From Mantamonas sphyraenae STR306 (Eukaryota; Protista; CRuMs), in assembly GCA_026936335.1 (NCBI GenBank), contig JAPMXV010000020.1:124001-188000 (forward strand): a stretch of DNA of 64,000 nt, given 5' to 3'. Positions 21,534 to 24,829 of the stretch are shown here, one piece after another (the stretch's first letter is position 1; the number at the start of each line of letters is the position of its first letter). The notes beneath the pieces are model-generated. The model had not been told where the DNA came from and made no database searches. It saw only the letters and a program-made list of their open reading frames with translations. Made by a program: the position numbers and the translations under genes.

Positions 21534-21628
21534 CATCGCATGGTGCTCGGTCGATGCCAGGGCGAGACGAAATGTGTCATCGCAGAGTGGAATGTGGTTT
21601 GCATGGGTGATCGACGTCATGGCGAGTG
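21534..21628 (-). promoter_or_regulatory. Candidate SECIS element in the 3' UTR of the FAM241-like gene
   Basis: Minus strand: helix I CA(C)TCGC/GCGATG; core ATGAC (21620-21616) and CGAG (21549-21546); helix II GTCGAT/ATCGAC plus CCA/TGG; unpaired AAA at 21600-21598; extra mini-helix GCGA-GAC/GTC-TCGC. The apex is longer than canonical. Confidence 0.5.
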
Positions 21629-21683
21629 CGTGTGTGTGTGTGTGGGGGGGGGTGGACCGGCGGATGCGAGGCAATGTTGCTCT

Positions 21684-22305
21684 CTAGCATCCGCTGTGAA
21701 AACACAAAGGCAATGTGAGCACATGGAAAGGAAAGCACGACGACTAAAGAAACACCGAGGGCTCAAGCATGGGCAACATACCCTCTGGATCAGGCGGAAG
21801 GAGGCGGTTTCGGCAAATCATCAATGGTCTGAATCCTGCCGCCGGCGCGCTGGCCTCCTGCGCTGCGCCCTGTTCCGAATGAACTGCTGCCACCGGCCTC
21901 AGCACTCTGCAAACACCAGCGACAGAAAAGGGAGATGGGGTCAGCATTCAGCAATGAGGAGTGGTCACAGAGACAAGGCTGGAAGGCTGGCGGAAAACGC
22001 ACAGGATTCCAGCACACGCCCACCGCAATGGCCAGAGTGACAACAAGGAGACCGCGGGTGCCAAAGAACATGAGGGCGACAAAGTAAGCCATGCCCAAGT
22101 GGAGGAAGCTGACGGGGCTGCCAAACAGGCGCAGGGTGCCTGCTTCCCTGTCGAGGGCATCCATCATCCTCGAGGAGGAAGAAGAGGTGGAGGAGGAGGA
22201 GGTGGAGGAGGTGGATTGGGCTTCAAGGTCGCCCGTAAATGAGGCCTTGCCACCCTTTGACGGGGCAGGGTCGCGGACGATTTCGCCGTTGACAATGCGT
22301 GTCAT
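21684..22305 (-). CDS. FAM241/DUF4605-like small membrane protein, candidate selenoprotein (in-frame TGA at 21790-21792); exons 22003-22305, 21782-21906, 21684-21693 (145 aa)
   Basis: MTRIVNGEIVRD and LMFFGTRGLLVVTL resemble FAM241 (MVRILANGEIVQD, LMMLGVRGLLLVGL). Gly-rich tail RIQTIDDLPKPPPSA-TGA-TCC-AGA-GG|GTATGT...GCTCAC...TTTTCACAG|C-GGA-TGC-TAG gives ...SA-U-SRGGC*. The donor of the first intron is uncertain (GTGCGT at 22002 chosen). Confidence 0.7.
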
Positions 22306-22405
22306 GTGTGTGGGTTACAGTAGCTGCGCGGTGGCAACCACACCGGCATTCTCAAGGACCTCGGCATCCCCCCCCCAACCCCCCCACCCCCCATTTCCAG
22401 GGACG

Positions 22406-24035
22406 ATGAGCAAGAGCCAGAGCCAGATGAGCAGCTCGACATCCAACGCCAGCATTGCGAGCATGGCGTCGTCGGATGAGTCGAGAACAAGCAGCCCCTC
22501 CTCCTCCTCCTCGGCTTCCAACAGCCACAGTGGCAATCAGGGCGGCGGGAACAACAACGTCAACGCAGGGCTGGCAGGCGCCATGCAGATGCAAATGCCA
22601 GGCCCTGTGTTTGGCACGCTGGCGCCGGGTATGCACATGCAGCAGGCGGCGGCGGCAGCGGCGGCGGCGGCGCAGCAGCAGGCCAGCCACTCGCCGTACG
22701 AGACATGGAAGGCGGCAGCGGCAATTGGGCAGATGTTTGCGGCCCGTTACTACCCGACACTGATCAACAATCCCGTCAACCTGATTACGTTGTACAAACA
22801 CGACAGCACGTTTGTGTGCGCACAGACCGGCTCGTCCACGCTCACCGAAGCCGACGTGGCCATTGGCCTCAACGACATCAAAGCCAAATGGGTGGCGCTG
22901 GAGCTGGCCGATGCCGATGTGGATGTGCAGAGTGTAGACTGTGTCAACACCGAGCACGACTCGGTGCTGGTCAGCGTCACCGGAACCATGCAGGCTCGCT
23001 ACGAAGCACACCCACGTCGCTTTGTCCAGCAGTTTCTGCTCGCTGTGCAGCATCTCGTACGTCGATCCACTCTGCAGCCCCACCTCCCACCTCCACACAT
23101 GCTATTTCCCACTTTTGTCAGCAGCAATGCGCAGCGTGGCCACGCCGCTGCGTGCCGCCCTGTAGCTTTGGCGCGTTTTGGCCCGGCCGGAACTCCCAAA
23201 ACCTCGTTGTTTGCTCACCCCACGCACCGGCCCACGCTGCCACCCACACCACCCACACCCACACCCTATCCCTCAGCCGCGCCGAGGTTACTATCTGCAG
23301 TCGGACATGCTGCGCTTCTTGGATGAGAGCGAGCGCGTGGAGGCAGACGAGGCGGGCGATTCGGTGCTCACGCTGAAAACGCTTCCGGACGAGCTGCGCA
23401 CCCAGTTCCTGGGACCCAAGGAGAAGGGCTCGCGCAATGCATCCATCGACGTGGCGCCGTACGTTTTGCCCATCTGCCCATCTGCCCTTTCCCCGCCCTT
23501 GTCGAGCGTGGCTTTGCATGCGTTTGGCGGCAACACGAGCCCTCGACGTCCATCATGCAAGATCGGGAGGAACGTCGCTGCTCTTTTTTTAGCTCACACA
23601 CACGCACACACGCTCATTGCGCTGCCACGGCCGTTGCATGAATGTGGATCCCTGCGCACACACATCCACCACACACGAAATCCACAGTTCGGAGACGGAC
23701 GCGTCCGTGTCGTCGCTGGCTGAAAGTGATGAAGCAAAGGCGGAGGCGCAGATGGAGGGCCAGGCGGGCGAGAGCGATGAGGGCGAAGGCGCAGAAGAGG
23801 GCGAAGGAGAGGGCGAGGCAGACGGAGAGGGCGACGGTGAGGCAGATGGGGACGATGAAGGCGCACGCGCATTGAGCAAGAGTGCAAAGAAGCGCAGGCG
23901 CAGGCGAAAGAAGAAGAAGGAGGCGGCGGAAGCGGCCGAGGCGGCCGCCGCAGCCGCAGCCGCCGCAGCAGAGGGGAAGGAAGCAACGACGACAACGACG
24001 ACGGAGACGACGGACGACGACGGAGACGACGGCAA

Positions 24036-24075
<40 letters not shown>

Positions 24076-24829
24076 TGGGGCAGCAGAGAAGGAGAGTGGC
24101 AACACCAGCAACGTGGCCACAAAACCCAGCAACGTGACGGCGGTGAGGAAAAACGAGGGCAGCAAGAGCAAGGGCAAACCCAGCAGTGCGGGCGGAATGT
24201 CCTGGGCAACGATTGCCAAGCAGCAGGGAACGGAGAGCAACACCAACAACACCATCAACACCAACACCAACACCAACACCAACGCAGGCGGAGCGACAGG
24301 AGCACGTGGACAGGGAAGCGCCAGTGCACCCAAAGCCACCAGCACCACTTCCAACACCAGCAACAGCAACAACAGCAGCAACATGAGTGGCAAGAAAGGC
24401 ACGGGCTCCGCTGGCAGAATGTCGGCGGCCTCCTCCGCCTCCGCGTCCACGTCCTCGTCCTCGTCCACCACCGCCACCACCAGCAGCAGCAGCAGCAGTG
24501 CAGGTGCAGGTGGCGCGAGTGCCGGAGGACGGTCCACCAACGGTCCGCTTCTCAGCGACAAAGTCAATCCCACCGAGCTCTTTGTCCGCAACGGTGGCAA
24601 GCTCAAGGAGAAGGAACTGAGGGATGCGTTTGAGCAGTATGGCAAGGTCGAAAAGGTGTACACACGCAAGAGCGCAGCGTTTGTCACCTTTGAGACTGCG
24701 CAGGGTGTGCAAAGGGCACTCGAGAGCAACCCCAAGCCCTTTTCCATCGGCTCCACACAGGTCGAGGTGGCCCAGCGCCGTCTGCGCCTGTCCACGCTGG
24801 AAAAGTCAAACTCTTCGAATGGCCAATAA
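22406..24829 (+). CDS. G3BP/Rasputin/Bre5-like protein (NTF2-like domain + RRM); exons 22406-23056, 23277-23458, 23688-24829; frame break at ~24013
   Basis: NTF2 domain: IGQMFAARYYPTL...LYKHDSTF...VLVSVTG...RRFVQQFLLA...YYLQSDMLRFL. Family motif MSWATIA. RRM: LFVRNG...LRDAFEQYGKV...AAFVTFE. Two GTACGT...CAG introns. Confidence 0.85.

Follow-up and report, generated by a model that had tools for sequence, protein, structure and literature searches.

A gene in the genome of the CRuMs protist Mantamonas sphyraenae STR306 is best explained, as a whole, as encoding a 145-residue membrane selenoprotein with a FAM241-like body and a SelK-type tail, a reading to which we give a probability of roughly 85%. 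The gene lies on the minus strand of the window, the 64,000-nt stretch of contig JAPMXV010000020.1 that was analysed, and has three exons (Table 1). Its ATG is at 22305 and the open reading frame track ends it at TGA 21792-21790; with that codon read as selenocysteine (Sec, U), the predicted product carries U at residue 140 and terminates in U-SRGGC. Judged by sequence comparison, UGA140 almost certainly encodes Sec, because the UGA is conserved, the Cys-ending tail behind it is conserved, a SECIS element lies in the 3'UTR and the decoding machinery is present in the genome. A selenoprotein had been proposed here by an earlier, sequence-only reading of the DNA, and this computational evidence (conserved TGA and tail, SECIS, Sec machinery) strongly supports the proposal.

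Table 1. Features of the candidate selenoprotein gene, in window positions.
Feature	Position	Strand	Description
Exon 1 CDS	22003..22305	-	101 codons; M-x-x-I-V-N-G-E-I-V N-terminus, Ser-rich linker, hydrophobic segment up to the conserved Cys
Membrane segment, DUF4605-like part	22012..22104	-	residues ~68-98, central FFG-x-x-x-L
Intron 1	21907..22002	-	96 nt, in frame, GTGCGT..CTGAC..TGCAG
Exon 2	21782..21906	-	Gly-rich linker, SelK-like tail motif, predicted Sec codon, codons S and R, two bases of G
SelK-like tail motif within exon 2	21837-21793	-	directly before the predicted Sec codon
In-frame TGA, predicted Sec codon	21790..21792	-	residue 140/145; same column in homologues L019 and L020
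Intron 2, predicted	21694..21781	-	88 nt; spliced tail agrees with homologue tails ending GC
Exon 3 coding end	21684..21693	-	G-G-C, then TAG stop
SECIS element, type II with long apex	21534..21632	-	pattern and fold comparison

The sequence-only reading had noted that the frame halts at the TGA (21790-21792) and that a textbook 88-nt intron sequence (21781-21694) begins eight nucleotides further on, and we found both in the sequence. This intron has the donor GTATGT at 21781, the branch CTCAC, a pyrimidine tract and the acceptor CACAG ending at 21694, and its donor, branch and acceptor agree with the introns of the M. sphyraenae SelK, GPx and SPS2 genes. Among the five AG acceptors within 200 nt, only that at 21694 has the CACAG context, and only that one yields the short Cys-ending tail SRGGC-TAG. 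The splice is a prediction from sequence, and the unspliced frame stays open for eight codons, so that retention of intron 2 would give the tail SRGYVAHA-TGA. A product with Sec inserted and intron 2 retained, U-SRGYVAHA, would lack a resolving Cys and might form an intermolecular diselenide as SelK does. We regard this form as very unlikely, since the donor, branch and acceptor follow the consensus and the spliced tail ends in GC exactly like the intron-free homologue transcripts. The spliced, Cys-ending tail of the predicted 145-residue protein is highly probable. Intron 1, which the earlier reading had left out, coincides with an alignment gap that the cDNA-derived homologues show across its translation (22002-21907). 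Homology searches used single exons or a contiguous genomic reading frame as the query, and the junction was translated only to check the frame. An intron begins 1-8 nt past the Sec codon in three selenogenes of this genome: the candidate gene (21790-21781), GPx (L007:1148-1152) and SPS2 (L011:1427-1431).

Exon 1, searched against 1.84 billion representative proteins, matched the proteins P0001 (E 8.7e-11, 47% identity) and P0002 (E 1.4e-4, 28%). A further match, P0003, is to a bacterial Ig-repeat protein and was discarded, the similarity being one of low complexity. The Mantamonas plastica protein P0001, taken from EukProt and annotated as complete, ends in DLPKPPPSS at the column of the M. 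sphyraenae TGA; its own stop codon is not visible in the protein record. P0002 and P0004 lie on AT-rich, intron-free contigs of one JGI soil sample, with an NKAP-like gene as antisense neighbour, and appear to be transcripts of a distant eukaryote. The soil cDNAs (L019 and L020) are 27-28% identical to the M. sphyraenae protein, and their tails read D-L-P-R-S-G-S-N-G-TGA-S-S-G-C-TAA and TGA-S-S-S-G-C-TAA, with the TGA at the M. sphyraenae column. Past the TGA, the two differ in a single whole codon and in one base whose change is synonymous. When P0002 served as the query against the M. sphyraenae genome, exon 1 of the candidate gene was the sole match (E 3.3e-8). Word-index protein searches gave no further relatives, and metagenome scans gave 30 pattern matches, all attributable to chance, and no confirmed locus.

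The position of the TGA, the Ser after it and the terminal G-C are thus kept at 28% identity, and they agree with the spliced form and not with the unspliced one. Because TGA and C-terminal GC are conserved in the transcript of a distant homologue, the observation in this gene is more than chance; the TGA codon itself was seen in two independent lineages only, L019 and L020 being near-identical variants. The alignment of the homologues also revealed an invariant Cys at the C-terminal end of the membrane segment, a Gly-rich linker and a T-x-x-D-L-P motif. The earlier suggestion that an unrecognised UGA cuts short those homologues whose annotation ends near DLPK is borne out by P0002 and P0004, which have TGA there, and P0001 fits it (same column, codon not seen). 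The soil cDNAs likewise gave both things that the earlier reading had said to look for, a TGA at the tail position and conserved coding after it. Its U-x4-C pair held in part: Sec and a terminal Cys occur in all TGA tails, but the spacing is x3 or x4, so that x4 is not fixed.

The putative SECIS element of the candidate gene has the core ATGAC (21620-21616) and CGAG (21549-21546), a helix II base of 6 bp, an unpaired AAA (21600-21598, at +15) and a long apex. The long-apex motif spans 21622-21546, and the element would lie 81 nt past the UGA in the predicted spliced mRNA. The arrangement CCATGAC..AAA..CGAG is common to the SECIS of the candidate gene and of M. sphyraenae SelK, SPS2 and deiodinase. 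All control selenogenes (SelK, SPS2, TrxR, Rdx/SelW-like and deiodinase) have ATGAC elements with 42-70-nt interiors, three of them with CC-ATGAC and CGAG flanks. A genome-wide search (50 Mb, both strands) gave 38 occurrences of this motif at about 36 sites, and the chance expectation of the motif in a 180-nt UTR is about 1e-4, for a pattern that was drawn up with the candidate element already known and whose gap ranges are spanned by the controls. Helix II closes on the core in five motif sites, namely the candidate gene, SelK, deiodinase and two unstable ones, and among the motif sites the helix that stacks on the core is longest in the candidate gene. Two other motif sites, L039 and L057, were rejected as SECIS since they look like antisense coding sequence. 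The fold energy of the candidate SECIS was no better than that of shuffled sequences (z -0.3), and neither were those of the control SECIS. Both soil cDNAs carry a canonical GUGA SECIS (GUGAA, a 10-bp helix II, AAAA, UGAG) 29 nt into the scanned 3'UTR, with helix II kept despite an A-to-G change. In L019 the SECIS core lies only ~44 nt past the UGA, a distance that is short by mammalian standards.

These data bear on whether the TGA is an ordinary stop, in which case the protein would end in PPPSA and the intron and the hairpin would sit in the 3'UTR by chance. TGA does serve as a true stop in this genome, in the Rdx and Sep15 genes; the loose SECIS descriptor matches 0.16 sites per kb; and gene callers terminate all homologues at the TGA column. 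An ordinary stop would nevertheless require that TGA, GC-stop tail and SECIS were conserved by chance at 28% identity, and that a motif with 36 sites per 50 Mb fell by chance in a 180-nt UTR. The Cys-form Sep15 gene, our negative control, had no SECIS match. We therefore consider an ordinary stop extremely unlikely, and retain Sec.

Rfam SECIS_1 (RF00031) had no match in the window, the genome or the homologue cDNAs, and it also missed every control SECIS of the genome, so that standard tools would miss the selenoproteome of this organism. Long ministems have been described for SECIS of Ostreococcus and Dictyostelium (PMC2375036). In M. sphyraenae the SECIS all begin with ATGAC, often as CC-ATGAC with CGAG, and their apices measure 42-70 nt.

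The sequence-only reading had asked whether the genome holds the machinery for Sec, and it does. The genome searched comprised 25,061,354 bases in 78 contigs. It contains a tRNA-Sec (64.6 bits, anticodon TCA), SepSecS (E 6e-137), an SPS2 with its own in-frame TGA, eEFSec domain 4 (E 1e-11), a PSTK-like gene (E 4e-12, under the cut-off) and an SBP2-like L7Ae gene, whose K-rich motif and RNA-binding domain pattern we take to be those of SBP2. The GPx, TrxR (GCUG), Rdx, SelH-like, SelK and deiodinase genes likewise carry an in-frame TGA at their Sec position. We gave almost no weight to a variant genetic code or leaky readthrough by which the UGA would encode Cys or Trp: nothing found speaks for it, the in-frame TGA codons seen all stand where Sec is known (Rdx, GPx, TrxR, SPS2, deiodinase and SelK), long matches such as SepSecS have none, and the genome has a true tRNA-Sec and SECIS elements. 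The published genome is described as 25.06 Mb in 78 contigs with 59% GC (PMC10492846).

Several of the other genes showed features of their own. The SelH-like gene (L018, G000:C52:88637-88789, minus strand) has S-x-x-U instead of C-x-x-U, and its best SECIS-like hairpin has the 3' core CAGG rather than CGAG, either a variant or an assembly error. The GPx gene (L007, G000:C3:86548-87153) has an in-frame TGA, and the SECIS descriptor matched nothing within 600 nt of its 3'UTR; its SECIS may be a long ATGAC hairpin in which GAGA replaces AAA. The Sep15/SelM-family gene (L010, G000:C13:42377-42592, minus strand) is a Cys form with C-N-C, and an AhpC-TSA_2 (SelU-like) gene (L023, G000:C71:71660-71863) with C-x-x-C is apparently a Cys form as well.

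We compared the predicted protein with known small membrane selenoproteins. It has one hydrophobic span of ~30 residues (Kyte-Doolittle maximum 2.08); an AlphaFold model of P0001 placed a helix at 62-93 with a pLDDT of 54, too poor for a fold search, and the fold search and the PDB sequence search were uninformative. Exon 2 encodes 8 G, 4 P and 4 K/R in 38 residues. An F-G-x-G stretch in exon 2 was considered as a p97-binding SHP box and rejected, since the final Leu is missing and P0002 does not conserve the stretch. The 15 residues that immediately precede U, aligned with pieces of the M. sphyraenae SelK tail in a register set by eye, scored 39, and the best of 5,776 stop-adjacent controls scored 23. 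The motif R-I-x-T-I-x-D-L-P-K-x-P is common to both tails. Architectural criteria for the SelK/SelS family reportedly go back to Shchedrina 2011; in those terms the candidate has 145 residues, one membrane segment (single pass or hairpin), a tail rich in G, P and basic residues, and, where Sec or Cys is expected within about five residues of the C-terminus, a terminal Cys with Sec sixth from the end (fifth or sixth in the homologues). Neither PF10961 (SelK_SelG) nor PF06936 (Selenoprotein_S) matched the candidate protein or its homologues.

Like SelK (SELENOK, PF10961), the candidate is small, with one hydrophobic segment, a Gly/Pro/basic tail and Sec near the C-terminus, and its tail before U is close to the RRMGTMK / LPKSPPATS-U-GR of M. 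sphyraenae SelK. However, its membrane segment is central where that of SelK is N-terminal, and its Sec is fifth to sixth from the end and followed by a terminal Cys, whereas Sec of SelK is second to third (PMC9344019). Because the N-terminal and membrane parts are unlike SelK and the tail is alike, the candidate is, on its predicted sequence, not a member of the SelK family and yet is built like SelK. With SelS (SELENOS, PF06936) it shares a membrane anchor and a disordered tail bearing Sec, but it has neither a coiled coil nor a p97 VIM motif. The Sec of SelS can pair with an intramolecular Cys. That Cys precedes Sec, whereas the Cys of the candidate follows it. MSP and hypothetical selenoproteins 1-3 of Ostreococcus and Dictyostelium (PMC2375036), the last three compared by description only, are also protist selenoproteins that so far lack a function, as is the UGSC family (PMC7539508), a protist selenoprotein without an assigned function; MSP differs in having two Sec residues.

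Kinship of the N-terminal and membrane parts with FAM241/DUF4605 (PF15378) is probable. DUF4605 is the best Pfam match of P0001 (21.7 bits, E 1.8e-4), and it scores 11 bits (E 0.38) with the M. sphyraenae protein; both lie under the 27-bit gathering threshold. DUF4605 matches neither P0002 nor P0004, and a genome-wide PF15378 search of M. sphyraenae found nothing. The family membership put forward by the sequence-only reading is likely, but it falls short of the Pfam threshold, and we do not class the protein as a member. Two ESM Atlas queries both returned a diatom-rich cluster (0.91-0.92), an oomycete cluster (0.87) and the DUF4605 cluster (0.86, with 182-187 features shared), scores under 0.9 being leads only. 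The N-terminal motif of the candidate presumably corresponds to the conserved start of FAM241B. The candidate resembles FAM241A and FAM241B in size, in its low-complexity linker, in a hydrophobic segment with a central G-x-R-G-L-L and presumably in its N-terminal motif. The human proteins (121 and 132 residues) differ in having the membrane segment near the C-terminus, and they are not described as selenoproteins. A 20-residue N-terminal motif of FAM241B has been reported to be conserved, and FAM241 has been reported at the ER and with OST (PMC11880036); the same 2024 study found no function and no single-celled homologues.

The protein could instead be a selenoprotein of another origin, either a SelK paralogue that has diverged or a separate subfamily of SelK/SelS type, its FAM241 likeness being confined to the hydrophobic segment. 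The strong likeness of its tail to M. sphyraenae SelK would fit such an origin, as would the sub-threshold DUF4605 scores and the Atlas scores that are only leads. We consider it unlikely: SelK_SelG does not match, hhalign gave a probability of 0.25% between the family profile and SelK exon 2, a separate true SelK gene is present in the genome, DUF4605 tops the Pfam matches of P0001, and the N-terminus presumably resembles the FAM241B start.

FAM241/DUF4605 may be an old eukaryotic family whose ancestor was a selenoprotein of the ER, carrying a tail of SelK type and a U-x3/4-C pair, an idea to which we give about even odds. This form would have been kept in CRuMs, in the soil eukaryote and perhaps in diatoms and oomycetes (the Atlas clusters), where annotations would stop at the UGA, and animal FAM241A/B would be descendants without the tail. 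Our literature search found no link of FAM241, C10orf35, C4orf32 or DUF4605 to selenium; Shchedrina 2011 may already include the family among its subfamilies of SelK/SelS. The SelK/SelS architecture is already known, and what is new is probably the apparent FAM241-like selenoprotein and FAM241 outside animals. New eukaryotic selenoprotein families are rare. If the ancestral-selenoprotein reading is true, it would add an undescribed family and give the first mechanistic lead for a human family without known function. The analysis also points to a group of protist proteins whose annotation goes wrong at a UGA, and it describes the selenoproteome of a deep-branching lineage together with its unusual, long-apex style of SECIS.

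A mechanism can be proposed from established knowledge of Sec decoding and, beyond that, by analogy. SBP2 bound to the SECIS would, with eEFSec, recode UGA140 as Sec. One long hydrophobic segment may anchor the protein in the ER membrane, as a single pass or a hairpin, and the disordered Gly/Pro/Arg-rich C-tail would then face the cytosol. There Sec and the terminal Cys, 3-4 residues apart, might cycle between selenolate/thiol and selenenylsulfide, with the thioredoxin system reducing the latter again; the genome encodes a GCUG-type TrxR. The R-I-x-T-I-x-D-L-P-K-x-P motif probably docks a partner, perhaps in ERAD or OST complexes, and the juxtamembrane Cys could conceivably be palmitoylated or act as another redox partner. 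We tentatively suggest, with somewhat less than even confidence, that the protein is, like SelK and SelS, a redox adaptor at membrane complexes that serve ER quality control, either ERAD with p97/Derlin or OST. The role of SelK in ERAD has been reviewed (PMC9344019), and a part in ER quality control can be tested directly, given the Sec/Cys redox tail in common with SelK.

The candidate gene is closely packed between its neighbours. A WD40 gene (21507-19536, minus strand) begins only 39 nt past the candidate SECIS core, so that the 3'UTR of the candidate gene must overlap the WD40 promoter. On the other side, an NTF2 and RRM (G3BP-like) gene (22091-24829, plus strand) starts head to head with the candidate gene, ~100 nt from its ATG.
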